NCBI GenBank assembly: GCA_002269645.1
Contig: NIVC01004862.1
Coordinates: forward strand, 1-32,984
DNA length: 32,984 nt
From: Macrostomum lignano
Lineage: Eukaryota
Direction: 5' to 3'
The first letter of the stretch is position 1. The number at the start of each line of letters is the position of its first letter. Shown in pieces: positions 5,153 to 32,984 of this stretch. Below the pieces are notes generated by a model, which ran no database searches, was not told the origin of the DNA, and worked only from the letters and a program-made list of their open reading frames with translations. Position numbers and translations under genes: made by a program.

Positions 5153-6838
5153 TTAGGCGATGGTATTTGTCTGAGCTGGAGCAGCCTGTCGGTTCATCTC
5201 TGCCAGCATTTTGATCTCCTGCTCGCAAAATCTCTGACCGAACAGAGTAGCCGAGATGGTACGGGTCACAGCCGCATTGAGCTGAAAGACACCCAGAGCC
5301 AACACTTCGGCCATTTGACGCGAGCGCTTCGGGTCGTAGCAGGCATTGTTGGGCCAGAGAGTGTTCTCCAGGTAGTTGCGGCACAGCGGGTCGCAGCCGG
5401 TCCGAGAGAAGCACTTGTTGGCGGCCATTTCAGAATAAACTCGTTTCGGCATGTCACCGTTTCGCATCGCGGTGATGTTGCAACCCCTCTCGATCTGAGG
5501 AGTGATGCCGCTCTCCACCCAGCACCGGTTGATTCCAGATACAGCGACACAGTGTCCGAGCTTGTCATGGTTAGTTTGGGCTACATTGTTCGGATAGTAG
5601 TATATCAAAGCGAAACACATTTCATCTCTGGCGCCTTCTCCAAGGAAGATGGTAACGTTGCTTTTTAGTGTGCTGTAGTAGCATTCGGTCTTTACTTCGT
5701 CACCTTTCCGGTATTCGATCGGTGGGTCGAAAGTGTGCACCTTCGGGGATTTGAAATCGTACACTTGAAGAGGAGACAGGTCTTTAATCATAGTTCCGTT
5801 TCTCCACAGCGAGATGCGTCCTTTAATGCCATAAGCGTGCATGTGAATGAGTACGGCGGTGATGTAGCGAGTCTCAGTGTGGTACCGGTTCGTGCACACC
5901 GAAGGGCACGTGTGGTTCACGCTGATCAACGGCTGTCGCGGTGGAAGAACAAGATTTATCTCGCCATACATAAGAGTTCCCAAGTCGTATGGTCGAAGGT
6001 TTTGTGTAAAGTAAAGAGCGAAGCCAGAAGCATCTGTGTAGTTAGAAATCCTCATCGGGTTGTTCCAGTGAAGCTGCAAAACTCCATACCGAATACCCTC
6101 ACCGCCAAATCGGAATCCCGCGTTGCTGTTGATGCACTCACCTTCGAGTCCATAGGCCCAGAGGTTCAGCAACTCGGTGCAGTTTCCAATGGGCATGAAA
6201 CACGGTTGTGAATTATTGAAAAGCGTCTCTGCGGGCTTGACATTGCAGACATACATAATCATGTGGTGCATGACGTTCTTGTTGTCAATGATCGGCCTCG
6301 ATCCGATCAGGTGAACCGGAGAGGCAGTGTTGTTCAGCTCGAACGCCTGACAGATGTAGGTTGTCTCTGTGGCGGGCACGGGAGTCGGTTTGAGGGTGAA
6401 GTTTCTCACGAAAACACCGGGCTCTTCGAATGCTGGACAGCTGAAGGCCTTCGGACACACGGTCCACGAGTTCTTGCACGTCGCGGAGTCGAGCGGGCAG
6501 ATGCCAGGGTGGGACAGTCCAGTCGTTCTCGACGGAGCCGCACCGACCTTCCACACGCAGTCGGGGTCTCCGAGCTCTTGGCCGTTCGTGAGTCCGTCGC
6601 CGTCTGAGTCCTTGCGGCACAGGTCGACCGTCCACTGGAGCCCGGCCGCCTTGAAGTCCAAGCCGAAGGGGTTTCTCGCGTTAGCGCCGGCGGGACTCTG
6701 GTGTCCGACTCCGGCCCAGATGGCGCCTGGCTGGCACGGGTTCGGGACGCGATCGCCGTTCGGGATTCGGGACTGGAAAATTTTGTGTGCGTGAGAGCAG
6801 CTGAGCAGTGCGGCCAGAGCCACAGAAAGCAGCAGCAT
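5153..6838 (-). CDS. Gene 1: secreted temptin-domain copper type II ascorbate-dependent monooxygenase (DBH/TBH/MOXD1-like), 561 aa
   Basis: Uninterrupted ORF. Signal peptide MLLLSVALAALLSCSHA; temptin-like IPNGDRVPNPC...GVGH...NPFGLDFKAAGLQWT.DLC.KDSDGDGLTNGQELGDPDCVW...LSHPG; ETTYIC; CuH ligands MHHM and LQLHWNNP; CuM ligands IHMH and DEMC; many N-glycosylation sequons; no C-terminal TM. Confidence 0.95.
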   Translation of the reverse strand: MLLLSVALAALLSCSHAHKIFQSRIPNGDRVPNPCQPGAIWAGVGHQSPAGANARNPFGLDFKAAGLQWTVDLCRKDSDGDGLTNGQELGDPDCVWKVGAAPSRTTGLSHPGICPLDSATCKNSWTVCPKAFSCPAFEEPGVFVRNFTLKPTPVPATETTYICQAFELNNTASPVHLIGSRPIIDNKNVMHHMIMYVCNVKPAETLFNNSQPCFMPIGNCTELLNLWAYGLEGECINSNAGFRFGGEGIRYGVLQLHWNNPMRISNYTDASGFALYFTQNLRPYDLGTLMYGEINLVLPPRQPLISVNHTCPSVCTNRYHTETRYITAVLIHMHAYGIKGRISLWRNGTMIKDLSPLQVYDFKSPKVHTFDPPIEYRKGDEVKTECYYSTLKSNVTIFLGEGARDEMCFALIYYYPNNVAQTNHDKLGHCVAVSGINRCWVESGITPQIERGCNITAMRNGDMPKRVYSEMAANKCFSRTGCDPLCRNYLENTLWPNNACYDPKRSRQMAEVLALGVFQLNAAVTRTISATLFGQRFCEQEIKMLAEMNRQAAPAQTNTIA

Positions 6839-7957: not shown

Positions 7958-9120
7958 GTAGCGGCAGCGCCTGTGAAAACAGCAGTGCCAACATCAGCAC
8001 CTACGGCGGCAACAGCAGCAGCGCCAAAAGCGCTACCAGCGACCGGGACCTACACCTGCGAGGTGCGAACCAATGTCGCGCCCTTTAGACGGCGACCGAA
8101 ATTCGCGCCGGCCGCAGACTCATGGATGTCACAATTCTTTGCATCCCAATCGATCTTACCCTCCTGCAAGCTTCACCAAGAGCATCTGTGAAGTGGCGGC
8201 TTCTTAACGTGGCTCGTCTACGAAAACAAACTGCCAGCGGACTGCGCCGCGACGAGCACCCGAATGATGGTGGAATGCCAGCATCACGGCTACCGGACAT
8301 TTGCCCTCCGGCATTTGCCCTCCGGACATTTGCCCTCCGGCATTTCCCCTCCGGACATTTGCCCTCGAGGACATTTGCCCTCGGGGACATTTGCCCTCCG
8401 GACATTTGCCCTCCGGACATTTGCCCTCGGGGACATTTGCCCTCGGGGACATTTCCCCTCCGGACATTTGCCCTCCGGACATTTCCCCTCTGGAAAAGTA
8501 CAGGTAAGGCTGGGGATAGGGTAGGGCGCGGGTATATATTGCTTACTAGAAAAGGATGAGTTGTTGGCTGGAGAAGAACCTGATGGATGCAAGAGGCGGG
8601 AGGATGAGGTTGGTGCTGGAGGAACGACGGGTGGGTACAGGAGGAGGTGAGGTGAGTAATGTGCGAGGGGGTAAATTTGCAGAGGGCAAATGTGCGGAGG
8701 GGAAATGTCCGGAGGGCAAATGTCCGGAGGGCAAATGTCCGGAGGGCAAATGTCCCCGAGGGCAAATGTCCCCGAGGGGAAATGTCCGGAGGGCAAATGT
8801 CCGGAGGGGAAATGTCCCGGAGGGCAAATGTCCGGAGGGCAAACGCCGCCGAGGGGAAGTGCCGGAGGGCAAGTGCCGGAGGGGAAGTGCCGGAGGGCAA
8901 ATGTCCGGAAGCGCAGCATCACACGTGCTGCGGCCTGTCGACACGCTTCAACAAGCTGCTGGCCGTCGTCAACCTCACCTCGCTCAGCCACATCGGCGCT
9001 GAGAGGGCTTGCAACCTTAATTGGCGAGAGGATGGGCCGCTTGACTGCCACCTGGACTGCCTCCGAGGGCTGGCGCACATTTCGTCCCCAGCTGTGGCTC
9101 AGCAGCAACCTGATCTTTGA
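7958..9120 (+). pseudogene. Possible decayed coding sequence disrupted by the foldback insertion; product unknown
   Basis: One frame runs from the P/T/A-rich ORF at 7973 through a single TGA (8189-8191) to the target site. After removing 8288-8922 (insert plus one TSD copy) it continues in frame to TGA at 9118-9120. No family recognised. Confidence 0.3.
8288..8913. mobile_element. Foldback/Mutator-like non-autonomous element whose inverted arms are 15-bp tandem arrays
   Basis: Left arm (CGGACATTTGCCCTC)n at ~8293-8490, right arm the reverse complement at ~8683-8908, with a ~190-bp unique spacer. Perfect 9-bp target duplication CAGCATCAC at 8279-8287 and 8914-8922. Confidence 0.85.
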
Positions 9121-12444: not shown

Positions 12445-14121
12445 TTAGGCGATGGTATTTGTCTGAGCTGGAGCAGCCTGTCGGTCCATCTCTGCCACCT
12501 CCTGCTCGCAAAATCTCTGACCGAACAGAGTAGCCGAGATGGCCTGAGTCACTGCCGCATTGAGCTGAAAGACACCCAGAGCCAACACTTCGGCCATTTG
12601 ACGCGAACGCTTCGGGTCGTAGCAGGCATTGTTGGGCCAGAGAGTGTTCTCCAGGTAGTTGCGGCACAGCGGGTCGCAGCCGGTCCGAGAGAAGCACTTG
12701 TTGGCGGCCATTTCAGAATAAACTCGTTTCGGCATGTCACCGTTTCGCATCGCGGTGATGTTGCAACCGCTCTCAACTTGGGGAGTGATGCCGCTCTCCA
12801 CCCAGCACTGGTTGATTCCAGATACTACGACACAGTGTCCGAGCTTGTCATGGTTACTTTGGGCTACATTGTTCGGATAGTAGTATACAAATGCGAAGCA
12901 CATTTCATCTCTGGTGCCTTCGCCATAGAAGATTGAAACGTTGGTTTTTAGTGTGCTGTAATAGCATTCGGTCTTTACTTCGTCACCTTTCCGGTATTCG
13001 ATCGGTGGGTCGAAAGCATGAATCTCCGGTGAGTTGTAATCGTACACTTGAAGAGGAGACAGGTCTTTAATCATAGTTCCGTTTCTCCACAACGAGATGC
13101 GTCCTTTAATGCCATAAGCGTGCATGTGGATGAATGCTGCGGTGATGTAGCGAGTCTCAGTGTGGTACCGGTTCGTGCACACCGAAGGGCACGTGTGGTT
13201 TACGCTGATTAACGGCTGTCGCGGTGGAAGAACGAGATTTATCTCGCCATACATAAGAGTTCCCATGTCGTATGGTCGAAGGTTTTGTGCAAAGTAAAGA
13301 GCAAAGCCAGATGCATCGGTGTAGCCTGAATGTTTCATCGGGTTGTTCCAGTGAAGCTGCAAAACTCCGTACCGAAGGCCATCACCGCCGATTCGGAACC
13401 CCGCGTTGCTGTTGATGCACTCACCTTCAAGTCCGTAGGCCCAGACGTTCATCAACTCGGTGCAGTTTTCAATGAGCATTAAACACGGTTGTGGACTGTT
13501 GAAAAGTGTCTCTGCGGGTTTTGCAGTGCAGGCATACATAATCATGTGGTGCATGACGTTCTTGTTGTCGATGATCGGCCTCGATCCGATCAGGTGAACC
13601 GGAGAGGCAGTGTTGTTCAACTCGAACGCCTGACAGATGTAGGTGGTCTCAGTGGCGGGCACGGCAGTCGGTTTAAGGGTGAAGTTCCTGACGGTCACGT
13701 TGACACTGTCAAGTGCTGGACAGCTGAAGGCCTTCGGACACACGGTCCACGAGTTCTTGCACGTCGCGGAGTCGAGCGGGCAGATGCCAGGGTGGGACAG
13801 TCCAGTCGTTCGCGCTGGAGCCGCACCGACCTTCCACACGCAGTCGGGGTCTCCGAGCTCTTGGCCGTTTTTGAGTCCGTCGCCGTCCGAGTCCTTGCGG
13901 CACAGGTCGATCGTCCACTGGAGCCCGGCCGCCTTGAAGTCCAAGCCGAAGGGGTTTCTCGCATTGGCGCCGGCGGGGCTTTCGTGTCCGACTCCGGCCC
14001 AGATGGCGCCTGGCTGGCACGGGTTCGGGACGCGGTCGCCGTTCGGGATTCGGGACTGGAAAATTTTGTGCGCGTGAGAGCAGCTGAGCAGTGCAGCCAG
14101 GGCCACAGGAAGCAGCAGCAT
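12445..14121 (-). CDS. Gene 2: secreted temptin-domain copper type II monooxygenase, 558 aa, tandem paralog of gene 1
   Basis: Uninterrupted ORF with the same architecture and all Cu ligands (MHHM, LQLHWNNP, IHMH, DEMC). Ends QTNTIA* like gene 1; no TM. Confidence 0.95.
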   Translation of the reverse strand: MLLLPVALAALLSCSHAHKIFQSRIPNGDRVPNPCQPGAIWAGVGHESPAGANARNPFGLDFKAAGLQWTIDLCRKDSDGDGLKNGQELGDPDCVWKVGAAPARTTGLSHPGICPLDSATCKNSWTVCPKAFSCPALDSVNVTVRNFTLKPTAVPATETTYICQAFELNNTASPVHLIGSRPIIDNKNVMHHMIMYACTAKPAETLFNSPQPCLMLIENCTELMNVWAYGLEGECINSNAGFRIGGDGLRYGVLQLHWNNPMKHSGYTDASGFALYFAQNLRPYDMGTLMYGEINLVLPPRQPLISVNHTCPSVCTNRYHTETRYITAAFIHMHAYGIKGRISLWRNGTMIKDLSPLQVYDYNSPEIHAFDPPIEYRKGDEVKTECYYSTLKTNVSIFYGEGTRDEMCFAFVYYYPNNVAQSNHDKLGHCVVVSGINQCWVESGITPQVESGCNITAMRNGDMPKRVYSEMAANKCFSRTGCDPLCRNYLENTLWPNNACYDPKRSRQMAEVLALGVFQLNAAVTQAISATLFGQRFCEQEVAEMDRQAAPAQTNTIA

Positions 14122-19473: not shown

Positions 19474-21683
19474 TGATGTAACCGCCCTTGTCGCCTGTCC
19501 GCTCCTATTGAGAGACGAACGCTTGGCTAGAGGGGGCAATGACCGTAGGCTGCCTATGACCGGGCAATGACCTGACGGACCTCCAGCACCAGACTGTCCC
19601 GCCCACATGATTAGTAGCTTTGGTAGCGCTTCGTGACCAGAGGGCCAAGGACCCACATGGACCCCACCTGTAGCCAAGGTGCAATAGTTGGTCACTCGGT
19701 CATGGTATGACCGAGTGGCTGCAACCACTCTATGTGACCTGGCGCACCTGGATCTTTCTACCAGACCTCTCGAGGCTAGAGCCCCGTCTGGAATGGTTAC
19801 CAGGGGATTTAGGCTAACAGGGGAGACGCATGCAGCCGAGTACAGGGACTCTGCTTGGGGCATGATCGGGAACTCTGGGCTCAATCCTGGAGGATTTCTC
19901 AGCAGGGGATCCTTTGTGGCTGTGAGCGAGGCTGACTTGCGACTTTGATTACTAAGAGTAGTATGAGGCGAACATGTACTGTCTCTAGTTTAGATTGCTC
20001 AGGGCGAAGGGACGCGTCAGCATGGGGTTGCAACCTTCCTACTGTCATTCTGTGCCAAGACTCGCTAATCCCTCTACTGCACGCACACGCGGCCCCGCAG
20101 CACGCACTCACAGGCGGGCTTTGCACGGGGAGAGGCCATTAGCTTACCCAAACTTCCTTATGCTTTGCCACCCCGGGAGAAAGGCTTAGCAAGCCATGAG
20201 TTAAATGATGGTGAAAGATCGAATAATGATGAAGTTAGTTAGTAGTTAGTAATTAGGCCTTTAGGCGAATAATTAGGCAATTAGGCGGCTTCACTATTGA
20301 GTAAAATACAGCAAAAGATACGGTATCACAATTGGCTCAGCTCTCTAATCAGACAATGGGAAATAGGCAAACCCCGGATAAGCAAAGACAATTAGAGCAC
20401 AAATTAGTAACAGGAACTTACCGGCAGCTGCACAGAGAGAGAGAGAGAGGCGGAGTGACCGGTGGCGGCTGTAGGCTGCAGTCAGGCAGACAGTGAAGCG
20501 GCGATGCGCTGGAGCGACGAGGCGCTGATGTAGATCAGGCGATGCTGATGATGCTGGGCGGTATCAGACCGCTGGCCGATAGGCGAGCTCACTTGGGGAG
20601 CTAAGGATAACTTGGCGGTAACAGACCGCGGACCGGCAGGGATTCGTCTTAGAGACGAATGGGTCAGAACTCAATCTGACAGCAAGTCCAAAGAAGGACG
20701 AGGAGAGGAAGAGTCTGAGGATTCTCATGCCGAAATCGCTTCCTTTTATACACCTCACAGCCGCCTCCTCAAGGTCGTTACCATGGCTCCCTCTCTCTGA
20801 TTGGCTGCCGGCAGAATGACGTCAGAATGAGTCATGATGAGAAGCATGAGACCGGCATAGCAACATGAGAAATCGGGAAATTGCGCAATCCGGAGGTGGG
20901 GTGGGGGGATAATTGGCGCAGCGGGTGGTCGCGAAAGTATTGCGCAAGCAACCATTGAGAACAATAGGGCTGGGGTCGAGAACAAAGGAATTGGAAAACG
21001 GGGATAATTGGGGAGAACTGAGAACAATGGAAAAGTAAACATTGGAGAAAAGGTGATAATTAGGTGCGAAAACGAGAACAAAAGAAAGAGAAAATCGGAG
21101 AAAATGTGATAATTGGTGGGGGTCGAGAGAACAAAAGAATCAAAAACGAGAACAATAGAAGCGGAGGTGGGGTGGGTGTCGCATGAGAAATTTGGGGAGG
21201 AGAACAATGGCATGAGAAAAGGTTGCGCAAGAGAGGGGGATGAGTCATCGATGAGTCACCGAGGGGGAGAGGGGGTCACACGACTTGCGTCACCGTTTGG
21301 GAGTTTGAGAGGGGATGGGGAGACGGTGAGCACACAAAATACTGTAAGTAGACACAGAGAAAGAGGGGGCAGCGCAGGAAAAGAGTGCAGAGGGAGACAA
21401 AAAGAGGGGGGATAGGGAAAGTACAGGAAGAATAGGGCGGAAAACAGAAGAGATAGGGTAGAGGGGGAGGTACAGAAAGGGGTAGGGGGCTCCGGAAAGG
21501 CAGGTGTGGCGGCAGGGGAGACGGGACCAAGGCAGCAGGAGGGGTGCAGCAGAGCGGGAGTCTCCAGGCCCGGTCGGAGACCTGGCCGAGTCTCGACAGC
21601 TCTGTGCAGAGGGTGCACGGGATAGGAGGCACTTTCGAAAAAGTTCCCATGCCCTATCCCGCGACCAGAGCGTGGTTACATCA
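19474..21683. mobile_element. Candidate solo LTR or non-coding LTR-derived element with purine-rich degenerate repeats
   Basis: Perfect 10-bp inverted termini TGATGTAACC / GGTTACATCA, flanked by TATT and CATT (imperfect 4-bp duplication). Internal (GA)n and a GAGAACAA-rich purine tract at ~20780-21500. No credible ORF. Confidence 0.4.
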
Positions 21684-22189
21684 CATTCTTCTATACAGTG
21701 ACTGCGCACAAATCCCTGTCGACTTAAACGCCAGAGAGAAAAAATCAATTTGAAAAGTCATATCAGGGAAAGAGCAGAAATTTTAGCATCCACAATGGGG
21801 AATTGTATTACATGGTGAGAAATAACGATGGCAGTAAGCGCATGCAGCCCGAAGACAAGCGCAAGGTGCTGTTTACTGAGCAGGAAGTGCAAGAAATGAT
21901 GTGTTCCTTATTACCAGTCCTCAACTGTAATCAAGGAACAATCACTTCTAGCTCTGTAGCTAGGCAACCCAGTAATCAAATGAAGGTATTCAATTACCTT
22001 TAATCCGGATTCTTAGATTTCGTTCTTGAGTCGTTCTCAACTGTAGATTTCTCAGTAGATCTCGTAGACTTCTAGACGTCTTCAGGTGTCGATCGGGTCC
22101 GAGTTTCCTTCTTCTCTCTTTTAGAAGTATTTCCGGCCGGAATCTGTCGTTCGGACCAATAGGAAGCTTCCAAATTAACAATGGGTACC

Positions 22190-22917
22190 CTGCGCCAAAC
22201 TGCGGTCTTAATTAAGCCTCCTTCTTCTAGCAGTGCCTCTATGCACTCTAGGAATAGCTCCGGAAACCACTGATAGTCTTCTAAGATCTATCAGGGGCAG
22301 TCCTTCTGGAGACTGCAACCAGTGGAGTCTAAACAGACTCAAGAGTCTCAACAGACTCAAACTAAACTCAAGTCACACTGGACTTGAGCGAGACGTCTCT
22401 AACAACAACAGGCGCAAATAAGGAAGGCTTACCGCAACAACCGACCGAGTATTGGTCCAGGAAGTCCGACTGTGGCTTCCTCTTCGGAGCTCTTCTCCTT
22501 CCGGAGGAATTGTGGCTCCGGGTCCGTTCCGGACCACTTGTATTTATAGGCGTTCAGACCTCTCTCGAGGTCGTACATCACTGTCTTCGCAAATGTCAAA
22601 GGGTCACGATTCGGTGGCTGTCAAGCATGACAGGGTAGAAAGTTGCGCAACTAGTCTACTGTAAAAGCGCATGATTGGTTACCGTAGCTGGTAGACTTTG
22701 ATTGGTTCATCCGGGTGCAACCCGAGTGCAAACCAAATGATGACTTGAAGGTGGGGTTTGAACTGACAGTTGTTGGTCGCACGTGATTGGGTGATTTCTA
22801 AAATTAGCATGCTCGAGATTTCTCTCTTTATATTGGTTAATTCGAATATATGTATGGTTCAGCGCATATCCTTATACATGCTCCTCAAATTACTACTATT
22901 TAAGTAGTACGTTAACA
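22190..22917 (-). mobile_element. Candidate 5' LTR with primer-binding site
   Basis: On the minus strand: several CCAAT boxes, TATAAATACAAG (22548-22537), GGTAAGCCTTC, then ...CCGCA-GTT-TGGCGCAG (~22198-22191), which matches the first 8 nt of a tRNA-Ser-type PBS. Confidence 0.4.
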
Positions 22918-22964
22918 ATTTTAAATAACTTTTCTGGGAGATATAATACTCTACAGAAAATGTC

Positions 22965-23647
22965 TTGAGCTTTCATTCTCAAGGAAGCCATGTTGGCGTG
23001 AAAAGCACCGTAAGTCTTTTCACGGCAAGGTACTATGCCGATATACCTGTAACACCGATTGCCAGAGCAAAACACCGAATCCCATTGAAGTTCCCAGGAA
23101 TGCGAGCGCCTCTTCGGGTTTTTGTGCACGGACTGCATCACAATGCCGACTACCACACCAAACGGTTCCAAGTATACCCTGACTGTATGCTGCAAGTTTA
23201 CAAAGTTTGCCATTTTTCGGGCGTTGCCGAACATCAAAGCGCTGACTATCGCAGCCGAGTTAAAGAGTATTTTTGCGCTTTTCGGCTGACTAATGGTGAT
23301 TCTCAGTGATCAGGGACGCGAGTGTTGCAACTTTGTCTTGGACGCCCTGCTGCAGTCCGGAGAAACACAAAAAGAGTGACCAGCGCTTACCAACCACAGG
23401 TAACCTTAGCAGTAATCTTTTATGCTTCTAATATTCTGTAGAGCATCATGTCGTTAAGTACGAGCAGATCACTAACTTTCCCCAGACAAACGGTGAAACT
23501 CAGTGCCTCAACCAAACGTGCATTAATCTACTGAGACAGCGGTGTGATTCTGAGGAACCAACTAACTCGGATTCCGTGCTGAATGATTTTCAACTCGCCT
23601 ACAACAGCCGCCGACATTCGGTGACGGGCTTCTCGCTGGGCAGGTAA
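22965..23647 (+). mobile_element. Degenerate Gypsy-type integrase
   Basis: HSQGSHVGVKSTVSLFTARYY (HHCC remnant); GSKYTLTVCCKFTKF; TIAAELKSIFALFG*LMVILSDQGRE; FPQTNGETQCLNQTCINLLR; LAYNSRRHSVTGFS. Contains stops and frameshifts. Confidence 0.85.
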
Positions 23648-23901
23648 ATAATACGAAAGTAATTATACAGAGAATCATGTATATTTTATAGTGCATACTT
23701 CTATACTGTAGCAGACACTGTTAGATCATATGCCTTCATTTCGGCGACCCGAAACTGACAGGAGCCCCGGAGATTTTAAACGGTAACACCGGTACGAAAG
23801 GCGTGCTGGGAATCGCTGTCAACTCGCATGAAATCAGATACCATCGGGTCCAGGAGATTTGAAAGGCTTGAAGGTTCTGAACGCACTGGCGATTAAATCT
23901 T

Positions 23902-23963
23902 CAGTGACAATGTACGTGACAATCAGTGACAATCAGTGTCATCAGTGACAATGACAATGTACG
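23902..23963. repeat. Short degenerate tandem repeat (CAGTGACAAT-like unit)
   Basis: cagtgacaatgtacgtgacaatcagtgacaatcagtgtcatcagtgacaatgacaatgtacg. Confidence 0.55.
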
Positions 23964-24372
23964 CTGCTAGGGTGGCTCCATCCATCGAATGGCATCAACA
24001 GATTCAGCATCAACAGTGACAAGCTTTTTTGATCAAGTAGTTATTCGATGCTAGTAGTACTCGTATCTTTTCATTTTCAATGTTTTTGCGGTATATTTAA
24101 TCAGTAAGACAAAAACTATTTTGCAAATTAAAATTAAAAATATACGAAAAATTATAATGTTCCAGATTAATTTTCATTCAATAAAAACCGTTTACACATA
24201 TACGCTTGTAAAAATTGTGTTGTGAAAAATCGATAGTTTTTAAACAGCTCATTTAAAAAAAGATTTTCGAGACCTAAATTTCTTAAAAATAAGCAAACTC
24301 TGATCAATCGTCCACCGTGTCACAGCTGGTCTTTTTGATTAAAGTTAGCTGAATCCAACCAGCGATTCTTCA

Positions 24373-26297
24373 TCAGCCACTCGCTTCATTGTCGTACACT
24401 TTATAGACGCTCGACTTGTCCGGAGCGCCCTGCTGTCCGCTGCTGAGCCCGGCAGCCGAGCTCGCACCCTTCAACTTGATTGACAGAAAGATTAGCAGAG
24501 CCAGAATCAGAATGAACCCCAGGCAGCTGCACACAACGATGATGATCAGCAGGTGCTCCGAGCTCAGGCCGCCCTTCTGCGACGTTGGAGTAGCGGGGGC
24601 CTAGCGGTGGTTGTTGTACGATCTGGAGCAGCCGGTCGGTCCATCTCTGCCAGCATTTTGATCTCCTGCTCGCAAAATCGCTGACCGAACAGAGTAGACG
24701 ATATGGCCAGAGTAACAGCTGAATTGAGCTGAAATAAACCCAGAGCCAACACTTCGGCCATTTGACGCGAACGCTTCGGGTCGTAGCAGGCATTGTTGGG
24801 CCAGAGAGTGTTCTCCAGGTAGTTGCGGCACAGCGGGTCGCAGCCCGTTCGAGAGAAGCACTTGTTGGCGGCCATTTCAGAATAAACTCGGTTTGGGATT
24901 TCACCGTTTCGCATCGCGGTGATGTTGCAACCCCTCTCGATTTGAGGAGTGATGCGGCTCCGCAACCAACACGAATTGATGCCCGACACACCGATGCAGC
25001 GTCCGAGCTTATCGTCGGTGCTCACGGAGACATCGTTAGGATAATAATATAGAAATGAAAGGCACATCTCGTCGCTAGTACCTTCGCCAAAGAAGATAGT
25101 AACGTTGGTTTTTTGTGTGTTAAAATAACATTCGGTCTTTACTTCGTCACCTTTCCGGTATTCGATCGGTGGGTCGAAAGCATGAATCTCCGGTGAGTTG
25201 TAATCGTACACTTGAAGAGGAGACAGGTCTTTAATCATAGTTCCGTTTCTCCACAACGAGATGCGTCCTTTAATGCCATAGGTGTGCATGTGGATAGTTG
25301 CCCCGGTGATGTAGCGAGTCTCATTGTGGTACCGGTTCGTGCACACCGAAGGGCAGGTGTGGTTCACGCTGATCAACGGCTGTCGCGGTGGGAGAACGAG
25401 ATTTCCCTCGCCATACATCACAGTTCCCAAGTCGTATGGTCGCAGGTTTTGTGTAAAGTAAAGAGCAAAGCCAGAAGCGTCGGTGTAGCCTGAATGCCTC
25501 GCCGGGTTGTTCCAGTGAAGCTGCAAAACTCCGTACCGAAAGCCATCACCGCCGATTCGGAACCCCGCGTTGCTGTTGAAGCACTCACCTTTGACTCCGT
25601 AACCCCAGAGGTTCAACATCTCGGTGCAGTTTCCAAGAGCCATGAAACACTGTTTTGGATTATCGAACAGCGTCTGTTCTGGCTTGACACTGCAGGCGTA
25701 CATAATCATGTGGTGCATGACGTTCTTGTTGTCGATGATCGGCCTCGATCCGATCAGGTGAACCGGAGAGGCTGTGTTGTTCAGCTCGAACGCCTGACAG
25801 ATGTAGGTGGTCTCATTGGCGGGCACGGGAGTCGGTTTGAGGGTGAGGTTTCTCATGGTCACGTTGGCACCGTCCAGTGCTGGACAGCTGAAGGCCTTCG
25901 GACACACGGTCCACGAGTTCTTGCACGTCGCGGAGTCGAGCGGGCAGATGCCAGGGTGGGACAGTCCAGTCGTTCGCGCTGGAGCCGCACCGACCTTCCA
26001 CACGCAGTCGGGGTCTCCGAGCTCTTGGCCGTTCGTGAGTCCGTCGCCGTCCGAGTCCTTGCGGCACAGGTCGACCGTCCACTGGAGCCCGGCCGCCTTG
26101 AAGTCCATGCCGAATGGGTTTCTGGCGTTAGCGCCGGCGGGACTCTGGTGTCCGACTCCGGCCCAGATGGCGCCTGGCTGGCACGGGTTCGGGACGCGGT
26201 CGCCGTTCGGGATTCGGGACTGGAACGACTTGTGCGCGTGAGAGCAGCTGAGCAGTGCAGCCAGAGCCACAGAAAGCAGCAGCATAGTCGTTTTCAT
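24373..26297 (-). CDS. Gene 3: temptin-domain copper type II monooxygenase, probably type I membrane-anchored (~641 aa if one base is restored; 577 aa as written)
   Basis: Same architecture and Cu ligands as genes 1 and 2. Adding one C to the C5 run at 24595-24599 extends the frame through PATPTSQKGGLSSEHLLIIIVVCSCLGFILILALLIFLSIKLKG...VYKVYDNEASG to tandem TGA TGA (24375-24370). Confidence 0.88.
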
Positions 26298-26362
26298 TGT
26301 TATTTTTCAGCAGCTTGAGGTTATTGCAGTTGAAAACTTGCATCGGCTGTCTGCTCTGAGAG

Positions 26363-26370
26363 TTTTTATA
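26363..26370 (-). promoter_or_regulatory. Putative TATA box of gene 3
   Basis: TATAAAAA on the minus strand ~65 nt upstream of the ATG, similar to the spacing in gene 4. CCAAT and TGACGC motifs lie just upstream. Confidence 0.5.
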
Positions 26371-28033
26371 CTTTTATTGAGAGTTCATCGAATGCTAAAA
26401 ATAAATAGATGACGCGCTGGACCAATGAAAACGCCCAGAAAGTTTATGCTGTCACTTAGAGTATGGTTTTTTCTAGAATTCATCATCTACGAGTAATTGG
26501 TGTGTCTCGTATTCTCAGACCTCGTTCTTTCCAGAAGTGTTTTTTATGCCGTTGTTATTGAGGCGTCACAAAGAGTACACTCTAAATAGACACTCGAAAT
26601 CGTGAGAAAGTTTTTGCAAGAATATTAACGAGAATAGTATAGACTGTCATAATTTTAAACCTTGTTGTTGGCATACCAGACAGTTCCAGTGATTATATAC
26701 TTATTTAGCGTTTGGTAGAGAGCATCGTTGGTAGAAAAGTTCAGGTGTATTATATAAATTAATCATAGTAAAGCGTGTGGTAATCTTAATAACCTACACG
26801 TCTCACCGAATTCGTGTAGGCTAATAATTTGTGAATCATTTGATGCAGGTTGTAGGGGTCGAAAAAATCGCCATTGAATAGACTTGCTTACACTGATCTA
26901 TGTAAATCTTGCAGCGCTGAGCTGCATTGTGCATGAAATTTCATTTTAACCGAAAGCTAGGAAATTTAATCGCACGGCTTTCATTGTCTATTCTGTTTGC
27001 ATCAAATGGAGCACGGCTTATAATTAAACTGATGGGCAAGAAAATGGAAAAGAGAAAAGAAAATAACCAAATTTTCGACGGGCAAAGATAACAAGAGCAG
27101 GGCGTTACGCTTGAATAAGTACTTGGGGCTGCGCTGGAGTAGCCAGTGCTTGTGAAGTGGACAAAGTTTCAAATGACGGTTATTGTTTTTTGAGCCTAAG
27201 CTAGGAAACGTAGAGCCTACGTAGCTGGACAACAATATGCAACTGACAGTTTTCTATCGTCCACTCCGCATTTTATGAGCTTGCTAGCTAAACTTAGAAT
27301 CGGAAAAATTAGTGCAGAAAGTACTAGTACTAGTGTGATAAATAATAATATAGACGATTTTTTAAAAAAATGGTCAACTTTTAATCAGCTGAGTTATAGG
27401 ATGCCACGGCTTAAGGAGTTGCTGGAATGAAAAGGATCAAGGGGAGTTGCGATTGCTAGCTCGTAGAAGGGGTCTTTAACAAGAAAGCTTGATACGATAT
27501 ATCAAGGTTAATAAACTCCTGCTTTACACCTCCCCGATGAGGGACCAATCTGCTAGTTTCCTATAAAACCACAAGCAGTACTATGAGGAAAATCGTAATT
27601 GATAGAGTTTAGTAATTTGCTTTTAAATTTCTATCATTTTTTCTTGCAGAAACTTTCCTTCGAAGTGACAACATTTTGGATAATGGAATATTAAGTATGG
27701 ATACTATTAAACTGGCTTGAACATCAGAACTTTTTAAATAACAATGCAAATTGTAGCAACAAATCGCAACTGTCGCACAGTTAAATCATTAAACGCGTAT
27801 CGCCATCGATCTCTAATGGTGCTTTTGATGCCTTTGCGTAAGTGTAATCAGCAGAAGATTCCTATTTTCTAAACTGTCCACAAAGCAAAGTTGACGCAAG
27901 CGCCAAGAGCAGACAAGAACAGACAAAGCTATAGTCACTTTTTGGACTCATTATACGAGCGTATGCATAGTCAGAAAAAACTTCACTTTAGCGTCTTCTT
28001 AGAAAACAACTTGTTTACTTTATTTAGTGTCCA

Positions 28034-29700
28034 TTATATAAAAAATAGCCAATATTGCTGGGTACTCTTGAAGTGAAGCGAAAGTTCCGTTAGCAAGAGG
28101 TTGGGAGAAATCAGCCGACACGCGCGTGATGCGTGAACAAGCATATAGCCTTGGCAGCAACTCCCCCAGATGAAAAAGACCTGCAAGCCTAAAAATAGCC
28201 CAGATGATCGACGAGCGAGAAGCCCAGCCATGCGACCCTCGCATGATGCATGAACCACCTCTGGCCGACACTGCCTATTAAGCCTCCAAGTCATTGTCTT
28301 TCTCGTCTTCGCAGGAATGCTGTCACTCAAATGACTCGGAAAGCCGGGAAAAATGGAGGGCACTGCTTCTGGATAGAGTCGCTTCCGTTCCAATGGCCGA
28401 AATACGACTTACTTTGACTTAGCTGCAGGGCTGTCCCGGAGGGGACACTTGACACAGCGGGAAGGCGCGGGCGCCCATTCCTCTAATCCCTGAACGGCCG
28501 ACGCGTCGCTATTGACGGAGGGTTGGCGCCGCCCAGGGAATCCCCCAGTGTCGCCAGCAGCTATAGTGCTCTCTGGAAAGGAGAGTTCAGCCCTGCGGGT
28601 GGCCCGAAGGTAGCGCATGAGCTGGTTAAAGTTTTCGGGTTTGCACGCTTCAGTAATAGATGTGTGTGGCCCGAGGTAAGTGAGTCTGGCCCACGTAAAG
28701 GCGGGACAGATGCTGACGAAATGCTCAGCGGTTTCGTCACCTGAGTTGCAGAAACTGCAGATGGCGTTGGTGGCGTTGCCCTGCAAGTACTGGTGCCTAG
28801 AGAAGCAGCCGTGACCTGAGAGGGTCATGGTGGCAGCCCGGATGTCTCTACGCGAGAGGCGCAAGAGGAGCTTCCGGAGCTGGTGAGAGGGCTGAGGGAC
28901 AGCGCCTCTGGATTCCCTGCAGGTGGTGCAGTTCGCCCAAGTCGAGCGGTGCTGAGTCCTGATCCACGCTTTGATGCGCGAGTCGATGACACAGCCGGGA
29001 ATCGGGACAAGAGGTTCGGGACCGAGAGAGGAGCCGGAGGCACCAACTTTTGCAAGGGTGTCGGCCAACTTATTCCCTCGGATCCCCACATGCCCCGGAA
29101 CCCTCATTTTGTTAGTGGGTGATTTTGTAATTTTGTAATTTTGTTAATTTTGTTGGTGGAAGTCAGTAAGAGGGAAATTTTGTTATTTTGGGTAATTTTG
29201 TTGGTGGAACCCAACATGTTGAGGAGTCTGATACAATCGAGGACTGTAGCAGAATTGGTGCAGCAGCCACTGATGGCGTGCAAGGCAGCTTGGCTGTCCG
29301 AATGGAAAATGATGTTCTTACCAGTAACGCCAGTGGCGAGAAGCTCTGCAGTGCAGGAGCTGATGGCCAGAACTTCATTTTGGAAGACACTGGAGTTGAC
29401 CCCAGTGTATTGAGCGTGGGTAGCGATGACCCTCCCGTCCAGAAAGATTCCAACACCAAATCCGGTGTGAAATCCTTCTAGAGATTGCACAAAACACTCT
29501 GGAATAAAGTGCTCAGAGCACACCTTGGAATGCTTTGAAGGTTTGAAATCTTTGCGGCGGCGAGCAGCTATCCATTTTTTCTTAACATCATTGTCCTTCG
29601 GGAAGGAGTGAAATGAGATTGCTGACGAACTTGAGGCCCTGTTGCTACAAACAAATGCTGTGCAGAAGTGACTGTTTCCTGGCTTTTTAGCTTGCTGCAT
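28034..29700 (-). pseudogene. THAP zinc-finger ORF (gene or P/Harbinger-type transposon 5' part) split by a LINE insertion
   Basis: N-part CTAFVCSNR...FHSFP...W...VCSEHF (29700-29469) and C-part RKRLYPEAVPSIFP (28398-28034) rejoin in frame (597 nt, 198 aa) when the insert is removed. Confidence 0.85.
28404..29468 (-). mobile_element. 5'-truncated R1/LOA-type LINE, copy 2 (RNase H C-part, CCHC knuckle, 3' UTR)
   Basis: SVFQNEVLAI, IFHSDSQAAL, VPGHVGIRGNKLADTLAK, LSGHGCFSRH...CSFCNSGDETAEHFVSICP, and an AAGT-like 3' tail. Flanked by GAAAT at 28399-28403 and 29469-29473. Confidence 0.9.
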
Positions 29701-29835
29701 CGTATGCTGATTGAATTATTTTTCGCTACACATTCATCAGTTTTCTTAATTAATCAACCATATATTTTTTTTCATTTTTACTTAGCAGTCAGTACAACCA
29801 TATGTGCGCTTGATGAGATTTTAGACAGATTTTAG

Positions 29836-30133
29836 ACAGTGGGATAGTGGGGTGCCCCGGTCCCCACGCAGTTCACTAAAATGAGTGGCTGCGGCGTTAA
29901 AATGGTGCCTGCAGCGCTAAAATGAGTTTCTGCGGTGCTAAAATGAGTGTCTGCGGTGCTAAAATGAGTGTCTGCGGTGCTAAAATGAGTGTCTGCGGTG
30001 CTAAAATGAGTGTCTGCGGTGCTAAAATGAGTGTCTGCGGTGCTAAAATGAGTGTCTGCGGTGCTAAAATGAGTGCCTGCGGCGCTAAAATGGTAGAAGT
30101 TCGTGGGGACCAGGGCACCGCACTATCTCACTG
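29836..30133. mobile_element. MITE with CAGTG termini (Tc1/mariner-pogo-like) enclosing a 21-bp minisatellite
   Basis: ~32-bp terminal inverted repeats CAGTG(G/A)GATAGTG(G/C)GGTGCCC(C/T)GGTCCCCACG with 3 mismatches. The canonical TA target duplication is not intact. Confidence 0.7.
29875..30093. repeat. 21-bp tandem repeat, about 10-11 units
   Basis: Unit GCTAAAATGAGTGTCTGCGGT. Central units are identical and terminal units are diverged. Confidence 0.95.
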
Positions 30134-31062
30134 TTCCATTATCGATCGGGGGGAGGAAAACTGAGGGTGCCATTTCCTCTATGACAAACAAGACATGCAC
30201 CCCTTAGTGTGGGGAATACCGGCATGCGCAGTCTAGTTATATTACTTGGTCTGTGGTACAGTGTGTTAGCTTATAAAATATACTGATTGCAGAGGAACGA
30301 TCCTCGCCAGAAGTTTGAGAATGTGACTCCAGAGATCACACAGAGAAAGTACCATCGGGTCCATTGTTCGTTGTCTTTCTGAACTGTTGGCAGAAGGAAA
30401 CATTTATGGGGAAAGCCATGATAATAAAACGTTTCACTCAGGAGTTTGGACTTGTGTAACACTAAGCATTAGGACATTTGCGTTGACGGTCGAAATATGT
30501 CTCAATTTTTACTTCTAGCGTTTTGGCTTATAGATACGATCTACCGATTGCCTTCCCGGAATGAAAGAATGCCAGCTAATGCAATAGAAAATGTGAGGAA
30601 TACTCTTATCTGTGGTCGCAGGTATTTAAGCATTTCGGCGCCACTACACGAGTCGAGTTTTACACGATCTGAACTTTATGTTCTGGGCACCTTAGGAGCT
30701 ACGAGTACTTTTACGGGTTAAAGTCTGTATATTTTAGCTCGTAAAAAGAACTCGTCTAAAACTTTATCATCTTAAGTTTGCCTCTGACTTCATTGAAAAC
30801 ACTTTAAATAAACATGTATGTAGATTCTTCGAGGTCTGTCGTGTACTTGGTAACCAAGCAAACAATGAGCAATATTTATCCAAGTCATTTGCTGCCCTTT
30901 TGGAAACCAAGCAGCTCACGACATTGGCAAACAGTGCGGTAGGCAGAACACGGCCAGTCGGGGCATGGATTCAAATGCAAATAAGAATTACTAAGTTAAT
31001 CATTCACCATAAACAAACATAACCTGAGAACCTGAGAACGCAGAAATGACGCACAAGGCGCC

Positions 31063-31070
31063 TATATAAA
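31063..31070 (+). promoter_or_regulatory. Putative TATA box of gene 4
   Basis: TATATAAA ~70 nt upstream of ATG 31139, with TGACGCA just upstream. Confidence 0.55.
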
Positions 31071-31138
31071 ATAAAAGATGCGTGGAAAAGAATGAACGAC
31101 AGAGCCGCAAATCTGCAGCTTTGAACCCGACCCGAATC

Positions 31139-32984
31139 ATGAAACTTGGAATCAGCTTAATAGCGACTGCAGCCGTTGTGCTGCAGACTGTACACGGCTA
31201 CTCAAGTTTCAAGTCGAGGATACCCAACGGAGATCGCGTCCCGAACCCGTGCCAGGTGGGCACCATCTGGGCCGGAGTGGGGCACGAGAGTGCGGTTGGA
31301 GCCGACACTCGCAACAAGTTCGGTTTAGACTTCAAGGCGGCCGGGCTCCAGTGGACGGTCGACCTGTGCCGCAAGGACTCGGACGGCGACGGACTCACGA
31401 ACGGCCAAGAGCTCGGAGACCCCGACTGCGTGTGGAAGGTCGGAGCCACTCCGGCGCGTACGACTGGACTGTCCCACCCTGGAATTTGCGAGTTCGGCTC
31501 CACAAAATGCAGCAACGCGTGGAACGTGTGCCCAAAAGCATTCAGCTGTCCAGCCATGAATGACCCCAGTGTGACCGTGAGAAACTTCACCATCAACAAG
31601 AACACCCCGGTTCCAGCGAAGGAAACCACGTATGTCTGTCAGGCGTTCGAGCTGAACAACACCGCCACGCCTGTTCACCTGATCGGATCAAAGCCAATCA
31701 TTGACAACAAGAACGTCATGCACCACATGATCATGTACGCCTGCTCTTCGAAGCCGAATCAGACGTTTTTCGACGCCCCGCAGGAGTGCTTTATGGCCCG
31801 CTCGGACTGCAATGAGATAGTCAATCTGTGGGCATTCGGGCTCGAGGGCGAGTGCTATAACAACAACACCGGCTATCGCATCGGAGGCGAGGGCTATCGC
31901 TACGCAATGCTGGAGCTCCACTGGAACAATCCGGCTAAGCTCAGTACATATACAGACTCATCTGGCTTGGCGCTCTACTTCACCCCAACCTGAGAAAATA
32001 CGACCAGGGCACTGCAATGTACGGCGAAGGCAATCTCGTGCTTCCGCCGCGTCAGCCAGTGGTTAATTTTAACCACACTTGCCCGTCGGTGTGCACGGAG
32101 AAGTACCACACGGAGACGCGCTACATCACCGGAGCCGGCATCCACATGCACGGCTACGGAGTGCAGGGCCGCATCTCGCTATGGCGAAATGGAACTCTCG
32201 TCAAGGATTTGCATCCGCTGCAGGCCTACGATTACAACTCGCCTAAAATGAACATGTTCGATCCGCCAATCGAATACCGCAGAGGTGACGAAGTTAAAAC
32301 TGAATGCTACTTCAGCACTCTAAAGTCCAATAAAACAATTTACTTCGGCGAAGGAACTAGTGACGAAATGTGCCTGTCGTTTCTGTCCTATTATCCCAAC
32401 AATGTCAGCAAGCCGAATTCTGAAAAGCTGGGCAGCTGCATCGCCGTCTCCGGAATCAACATGTGCTGGGTGCAGAGCGGCATCGAGCCTCACATAGAGC
32501 GGGAATGCAACATCACAGACATGCGAAACGGCAACCTCACTGAACAGGTATCAGCCGAAATGACAGCCAATGGATGCTTCTCCAAGACCGGCTGCAATCC
32601 AAAATGCCGTGACTATCTCAACAACACCCTGTGGCCGTCGAACGCCTGCTACGATCCGAAGCGAGCGCTTCAGATGACCGAGACAATGGCCACGGGATAT
32701 CTGATAAATCAGTCACGCAAGCCGACCTTTATTAAGACACTATACGGTCAGAGCTTCTGCAACAGGAGGTTGCCATGCTGTCGACGCTAGACCAGAAAGC
32801 TGCCACAATTTCGGCGTCTACAACCCGACTACAAACCAGGTGTTGGGTTCGAGTTACACTGGATTGAAGTCCGAGCACCTGCTTATCATTATTATTGTTT
32901 GCAGCTGCCTCGGCTTATCATTCATAATCATAGCTATTCTGGGTGTAGCGCTAGCAAGCTAGGAGGCGACGGCTTCCCGAAGCC
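31139..32984 (+). CDS. Gene 4: divergent temptin-domain copper type II monooxygenase with C-terminal TM. Broken as written by 3-4 single-base deletions (assembly error or pseudogene) and probably runs off the window.
   Basis: Signal peptide MKLGISLIATAAVVLQTVHG; temptin domain; MHHM, LELHWNNP, IHMH, DEMC. One-base shifts at ~31987, ~32762 and ~32825 restore FTPNLRKYDQGTAMYGE, CxQEVAML and TTPTTNQ...KSEHLLIIIIVCSCLGLSFIIIAILGVALA. Confidence 0.85.

Follow-up and report, generated by a model that had tools for sequence, protein, structure and literature searches.

The 32,984-bp stretch analysed here (the window) corresponds, by exact-sequence look-up, to the entire contig NIVC01004862.1 of the Macrostomum lignano assembly Mlig_3_7 (GCA_002269645.1) and carries four paralogous genes, g1-g4. 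In a Pfam scan, each of them encodes a Temptin_C domain followed by the two copper type II ascorbate-dependent monooxygenase domains, and no DOMON domain was matched in any of the four. Of particular interest is g3, whose coding sequence (CDS) as assembled (24564-26297, minus strand) specifies 577 amino acids (aa), is cut by a frameshift and ends in ...ARPPLLQRRRRAA. Judged by its sequence relatives, an out-of-frame stretch of 75 codons at the end of g3 is the true C-terminus of a single-exon Temptin/copper type II monooxygenase gene, and comparison with these relatives supports a full product of 641 aa that is predicted to be a type I single-pass membrane protein.

The assembled open reading frame (ORF) of g3 has ...TTTTARPPLLQRRRRAA as its final residues, and its minus-strand end reads ...gct agg ccc ccg cta ctc caa cgt cgc aga agg gcg gcc tga. 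This frame stops 11 codons past a run of five C (C5; 24595-24599, minus strand; G5 on the plus strand), which is the site of a one-base length difference; on the minus strand the context of the run is CCGCTAGG(C)nGCTACTCC, with the 3' flank GCTACTCC. The initial annotation had drawn attention to both the ending PPLLQRRRRAA and the C5 run, and both are confirmed from the sequence. Directly upstream of the run, a TAG stands in the -1 frame (24601-24603, minus strand), and any frame switch must therefore be confined to the C run itself. Right after this TAG begins an open stretch of the -1 frame, 75 codons long (24600-24376, minus strand; APATPTSQKGGLSSEHLLIIIVVCSCLGFILILALLIFLSIKLKGASSAAGLSSGQQGAPDKSSVYKVYDNEASG), which comprises, on the same strand, the out-of-frame part of a Ser/Thr/Pro stalk (24553-24600; APATPTSQKGGLSSEH), a transmembrane (TM) helix of 25 aa (24478-24552; LLIIIVVCSCLGFILILALLIFLSI; residues 583-607 of the restored protein) and a predicted cytoplasmic tail of 34 aa (24376-24477; KLKGASS...KSSVYKVYDNEASG), after which two tandem stops (TGA TGA, 24370-24375) close the restored ORF. 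Residues 556-580 of the restored protein consist to 52% of Ser, Thr and Pro, and the helix reaches a Kyte-Doolittle mean of 3.31 over 19 residues, compared with an ectodomain maximum of 1.56. The peptide that follows it, KLKGASSAAGLSSGQQGAPDKSSVYKVYDNEASG, begins with the basic KLK on the C-terminal side of the helix and ends in VYKVYDNEASG. The stalk, the KLK and the paired stops are thus all present in the -1 frame as had been proposed; that the frame opens after the C5 run and encodes a hydrophobic helix also stands, and only the lengths given for them (approx. 74 codons and approx. 22 aa) fall short of the counts.

It should be noted that the openness of this frame is no greater than expected by chance, as at least 12 of 100 off-frame segments of g1-g3 are open for at least 89 codons. 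Since long off-frame stretches are common in these genes (a dozen cases of 89-152 codons), openness was rejected as stand-alone evidence for the tail, which is judged real because it is homologous to in-frame tails and not because its frame is open. Indeed, the same assembly holds a copy of g3 on contig NIVC01000861.1 in which the run is C6 and which encodes P0123 (PAA75815.1, BOX15_Mlig017064g4), a protein of 641 aa identical to the restored g3 protein at 641/641 positions, with a tail 100% identical to that encoded out of frame in the window. At the DNA level, g3 and this copy differ only by one synonymous single-nucleotide polymorphism (SNP; window position 24771) and by the C run. The 577-aa protein, in turn, is annotated on both NIVC01004862.1 and NIVC01000757.1, and C5 is found in both. 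The anchored protein is therefore not new, since GenBank already lists its exact 641 aa, deposited from this very assembly; nor can the anchor be called hidden, as the initial annotation had it. Similarly, the suggestion that the ancestral protein was anchored holds insofar as the anchor is real and in frame in relatives; it is, however, not ancestral only, having been deposited intact.

A homology search with the restored 641 aa retrieved P0001 (PAA84778.1, 640 aa, M. lignano; 94% identical), four others that are M. lignano or Macrostomum-like, and more than 100 proteins of molluscs, brachiopods and bryozoans that share the three Pfam domains. The anchor motif is in frame in six Macrostomum relatives: in an alignment of P0001-P0006, all carry (S/T)SEHLLIIIxVCSCLG behind a Ser/Thr/Pro-rich stalk. 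The P0001 segment ...DRTTTTATPPATPSSQKGGLSSEHLL... aligns with ...DRTTTTARPPATPTSQKGGLSSEHLL... of restored g3, and at the position of the C run the P0001 gene has an interrupted CCGCCC and remains in frame. The helix and the tail are both in frame in P0123, P0001 and P0003-P0006, but not in the assembled g3 ORF; P0002 is an exception, having a tail of only a few residues. P0003 and P0005 stem from Logan contigs of approx. 2 kb (run SRR28338163) with a complete CDS, short flanks and the anchor in frame; these contigs look like mRNA, although an RNA origin is not confirmed. The g3-type gene is a single exon, the CDS length being 3 x (aa + 1) in both L001 and L002. Neither product, of 641 or of 577 aa, has an exact match in any Logan read-set assembly, and a search with the 140 C-terminal residues of restored g3 gave no match below E = 0.001 but missed the known relatives too, and is thus uninformative on transcripts. 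An exhaustive representative search with the 75-aa tail returned only two matches of no useful homology, an SRCR-repeat protein whose stalk and TM helix are generic and a low-complexity protein. No paper was found by full-text search with the gene identifiers. One of the anchored relatives, P0006 (M. lignano BOX15_Mlig002911g1), has IRHMV in place of HHM and YMQSY in place of HMH, and its third CuH histidine is deleted; this loss of copper ligands has probably left a catalytically dead protein in the membrane, with the helix and the tail kept.

The remainder of the g3 protein includes a complete catalytic core. Its N-terminus is hydrophobic (Kyte-Doolittle mean of 1.66 over 19 residues), with small residues at -3 and -1 and an SHA motif, and a signal peptide with likely cleavage after SHA is predicted (MKTTMLLLSVALAALLSCSHA; 26235-26297, minus strand) by a hydropathy heuristic rather than by a trained predictor. 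It is followed, on the same strand, by Temptin_C (residues 20-117; 25947-26240; PF24784, E=6.7e-39), which occupies the place of DOMON in DBH, by the N-terminal catalytic domain Cu2_monooxygen (residues 151-268; 25494-25847; PF01082, E=1.6e-23) and by Cu2_monoox_C (residues 298-421; 25035-25406; PF03712, E=6.7e-19), the last two both exceeding the gathering scores of their families. All six copper ligands of PHM and DBH are kept: H195 and H196 (VMHHMIMY) and H261 (LQLHWNN) of the CuH site align with DBH (4zel) and with H107, H108 and H172 of PHM, and H336 and H338 (IHMHTYG) and M411 (SDEMC) of the CuM site align with DBH and with H242, H244 and M314 of PHM. Residues 422-565 are Cys-rich and match no Pfam family. 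All 10 N-glycosylation sequons and all 24 Cys lie in the ectodomain, N-terminal to the TM helix. In the full product, the signal peptide would be cleaved, Temptin_C and the two-copper catalytic core would face the lumen or the cell exterior, and the C-terminal helix would hold the protein in the membrane with its short tail in the cytoplasm; by analogy with the established mechanism of PHM and DBH, the product would be a lumenal or extracellular two-copper hydroxylase. The proposal of a type I membrane monooxygenase with a stalk, a helix and a tail is thus supported by the C6 copy, which encodes the predicted 641 aa, and by the six relatives anchored in frame. The tail does not, however, contain the Tyr-based sorting motifs that had been considered possible, as YKVY and YDNE lack a bulky hydrophobic residue (L/I/M/V/F) at +3 and are not canonical YxxØ. 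What is conserved in the tail across paralogs is a Y-[DE]-N element (VYDNEA, AYDNQA, EYENSA, EYENGA).

The other three genes of the cluster end differently. The products of g1 (5153-6838, minus strand; 561 aa) and g2 (12445-14121, minus strand; 558 aa) have no stalk, helix or tail: similarity to g3 ends exactly at the start of the stalk (approx. 24604), both ORFs close with ...APAQTNTIA and TAA, and the two genes share a distinct AT-rich 3' region with AATAAA that extends to about 4910 and 12200, respectively. As natural anchorless paralogs, they presumably encode secreted proteins. The full-length g1 and g2 proteins have no exact record in the protein collection, where g1 is matched only by a 136-aa N-terminal product (P0122). 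The fourth gene, g4 (31139-32984, plus strand), is cut by the contig end and is the counterpart of P0004 (650 aa), with which it is colinear. As reported in the initial annotation, the SEHLLIII.VCSCLG motif is present at its end (GLKSEHLLIIIIVCSCLG; 32861-32956, plus strand), out of frame with the upstream ORF. The frame changes at 31987 (G4 vs. G5) and then by further indels, which fall in the final 225 nt of the contig, at 32761, 32825, 32917-32921 and 32950. Two other contigs, NIVC01000757.1 and NIVC01000416.1, encode P0004 without a break, and in P0126, a model from the older ML2 assembly, the frame is likewise kept; because of these intact versions, the out-of-frame motif of g4 is not a fossil but the result of a run-length difference and contig-end noise. 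Together with the 5-6 indels found within 300 nt of each contig end in the pair NIVC01000416.1/NIVC01000861.1, the g4 indels show that contig ends in Mlig_3_7 are of low quality.

Is the C5 run of g3 an error of a comparable kind? The C5/C6 comparison rests on assembled contigs. Mlig_3_7 was built with Canu from PacBio reads, followed by Pilon polishing, and duplicated blocks of at least 95% identity make up 180 Mb of it (PMC5730564). Near-identical contigs were compared for length differences in homopolymers of at least five bases. Between the window and NIVC01000757.1 (15.4 kb), length differs in 4 of 16 C/G runs and in none of 59 A/T runs; between NIVC01000757.1 and NIVC01000861.1, the figures are 2/5 and 0/44 in a block of 9.5 kb and 1/9 and 0/15 in a block of 4.9 kb. 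Summed over the three blocks, 7 of 30 C/G runs are discordant, compared with 0 of 118 A/T runs (Fisher p = 7.6e-6). NIVC01000416.1, which begins inside g3 and short of the C run, overlaps NIVC01000861.1 by 7 kb with a single SNP, and the two are therefore taken as one haplotype split by the assembler; here, 1 of 4 C/G runs (G6/G5) and 1 of 27 A/T runs disagree, which brings the overall discordance to 8/34 and 1/145. A discordance of approx. 25% in C/G runs even within one haplotype is a technical signature rather than polymorphism. Moreover, in both cases that fall in coding sequence (31987 in g4 and 24595-24599 in g3), it is the shorter run that breaks the conserved frame, which fits consensus errors of the deletion type. 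We thus consider the g3 frameshift to be, with a probability of roughly 0.7, an assembly artefact caused by a long-read homopolymer consensus error. The run would have been read as five bases instead of six, and the error would have been left unrepaired by polishing: short reads carrying six C would find their best alignment in the C6 copy located elsewhere in the redundant assembly of this neopolyploid genome, and the C5 contigs would consequently receive no correcting evidence.

Several observations weigh against an artefact and are what one would expect if C5 were a genuine truncating allele of very recent origin, borne by one or two redundant copies in a neopolyploid genome, an explanation that we regard as unlikely overall. 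C5 occurs on two contigs, NIVC01004862.1 and NIVC01000757.1, that are distinct copies further along (approx. 97% identity beyond window position ~17300); with independent errors (per-call error ~0.14), the probability of a shared double error somewhere in the 9.5-kb block, with its five C/G runs, is ~0.25, and that of a true run polymorphism, given the SNP divergence seen here (0.08%), is roughly 0.04-0.2, so that a shared error would be about as likely as a real polymorphism. The balance between artefact and allele given here follows from these two probabilities. However, the two C5 contigs are identical over 21412-31986 and for this reason may have drawn on a common pool of reads, which weakens the objection without removing it. 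The C6 haplotype is 8 SNPs per 9.8 kb away, and the difference could thus be allelic; polishing with Illumina and RNA-seq data left the run unchanged (PMC5730564); and anchorless genes with their own stop and AATAAA, g1 and g2, lie in the same cluster. The truncated 577-aa ORF, moreover, retains all domains and every copper ligand, so that such an allele, improbable as it is, would yield a secreted form with a signal peptide and the full catalytic core but without the anchor; exon-junction nonsense-mediated decay would not be expected because the gene is intronless. Nonetheless, the 225-nt out-of-frame tail shows no substitution relative to the C6 copy, which would make the event extremely recent, none of the aligned relatives shows a counterpart of the new C-terminus PPLLQRRRRAA, and run discordance that is specific to C/G, even in one haplotype, points to technical error. 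According to the initial annotation, the anchor would be a recent fossil if reads and transcripts showed C5 and relatives lacked an in-frame helix; the relatives keep the helix in frame. Were C5 real, a homopolymer change would just have turned one copy of an anchored ecto-monooxygenase into a secreted enzyme, a scenario that we hold to be doubtful; it would repeat the loss of the anchor in g1 and g2 by another route and represent an early step of duplicate divergence, into anchored and soluble forms, in a neopolyploid flatworm.

Two further explanations accept the assembled sequence as correct and let decoding or splicing join the frames. With programmed -1 ribosomal frameshifting, or with transcriptional slippage at the C run, a single gene would yield two products, one short and secreted and the other long and anchored, and the -1 frame does open exactly at the run, right after the TAG, with -1 being the direction needed. 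However, G CCC CCG does not have the X XXY YYZ form of a slippery heptamer, and the downstream 121 nt do not fold better than shuffled sequence (z = +1.04; of 200 shuffles, 174 fold equally well or better), as a stimulatory structure should; a programmed -1 site was rejected on these two grounds. A run of five C is also short for polymerase slippage, the C6 copy encodes the long form directly, and the closest paralog is in frame with its interrupted CCGCCC, all of which leaves recoding highly improbable. An intron joining the main ORF to a tail exon is harder still to believe. A GT...AG pair (24619...24601) with a pyrimidine-rich acceptor does lie just upstream of the run, but the interval is only 19 nt long, its removal gives the +1 frame and not that of the tail, and the intact copies each consist of one unbroken exon, colinear with the window except for one C; the intron was therefore rejected as well.

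With a consensus error as the preferred explanation, the 641-aa anchored protein is probably the correct reading of the 577-aa models annotated on NIVC01004862.1 and NIVC01000757.1. More generally, the length of C/G runs of five or more bases in Mlig_3_7 should be treated as unreliable because about a quarter of them disagree between duplicate contigs. For the family itself, the locus places anchored and anchorless paralogs side by side in one cluster.

The window also contains features outside the monooxygenase genes. Between the divergent g3 and g4 lies an ORF with a THAP zinc finger (29104-29700, minus strand; E = 4e-13), which may be a transposase-derived gene or its remnant; it is followed by a second ORF in another frame (28409-29107) without a family match. 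The same intergenic region carries a 21-nt tandem repeat (CTAAAATGAGTGTCTGCGGTG; 29876-30092; 10.4 copies, 93% matches). A 15-nt unit (CCGGACATTTGCCCT) forms two arrays of 13-15 copies each (8293-8494 and 8682-8909), which are mutually reverse-complementary and approx. 190 nt apart and thus make up a large inverted repeat built of tandem repeats; the crowding of overlapping ORFs on both strands at 8293-8909 is explained by these arrays. The segments at approx. 19474-21684 and 21897-22954 are present in the window and in NIVC01000757.1 and are missing from NIVC01000861.1. The latter segment is probably a mobile or repeated element, as an inverted copy (89% identical) lies upstream of the P0001 gene on NIVC01000362.1. 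The 20-22 kb region of the window has an unusually strong GC skew (0.24) and AT skew (0.27).

Within the context of known systems, sequence comparison identifies the g3 family as the lophotrochozoan Temptin/copper-monooxygenase hybrid, a gene described in 2009 as lophotrochozoan specific in Aplysia (DBH-like AAY42041), Pomatoceros and Lottia (PMC2762978). The two share a temptin-type domain N-terminal to Cu2_monooxygen and Cu2_monoox_C, the lack of DOMON and a lophotrochozoan host. They differ at the C-terminus, where the Macrostomum proteins, with the exception of P0002, have a TM helix and a cytoplasmic tail of 26-40 aa. According to the hydropathy heuristic, only 2 of 114 non-Macrostomum homologs have a helix followed by a tail, whereas 86 of 114 end in a hydrophobic stretch with no more than 8 residues beyond it. 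On the same heuristic, these 86 endings look like glycosylphosphatidylinositol-attachment signals or tail-less anchors, and in most of the molluscan, brachiopod and bryozoan homologs (P0007-P0120) small residues precede the hydrophobic stretch at the extreme C-terminus. Thus, a true TM helix and a conserved cytoplasmic Y-[DE]-N distinguish the Macrostomum members of the family from most molluscan relatives, which have a tail-less hydrophobic end.

Nothing in these features is surprising for the PHM/DBH superfamily. Among solved structures, the catalytic core of g3 is best matched by DBH/MOXD1 (4zel; E = 6.9e-30, residues 156-421). Unlike DBH and MOXD, however, g3 has no DOMON domain (the UniRef name "DOMON domain-containing" is not borne out, as the Pfam scan gave no DOMON match), and its anchor is C-terminal, whereas membrane DBH is anchored by an uncleaved N-terminal signal. 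With PAM, whose PHM part matches at E about 4e-16, g3 shares the catalytic fold and all six copper ligands. PAM is a type I protein: its catalytic core is lumenal, and a C-terminal TM helix leads into a short cytosolic tail. The restored g3 protein would, by analogy, adopt the same arrangement. Unlike PAM, g3 has an N-terminal Temptin_C, no Pfam match to a PAL (peptidyl-hydroxyglycine lyase) domain and a tail without sequence similarity to that of PAM. The likeness to PAM and the contrast with DBH drawn in the initial annotation are therefore fair as an analogy of topology, a C-terminal anchor being set against the N-terminal one of DBH. The g3 protein is PAM-like in its topology, yet it is neither a PAM, since it has no PAL, nor a DBH or MOXD, since it has no DOMON.

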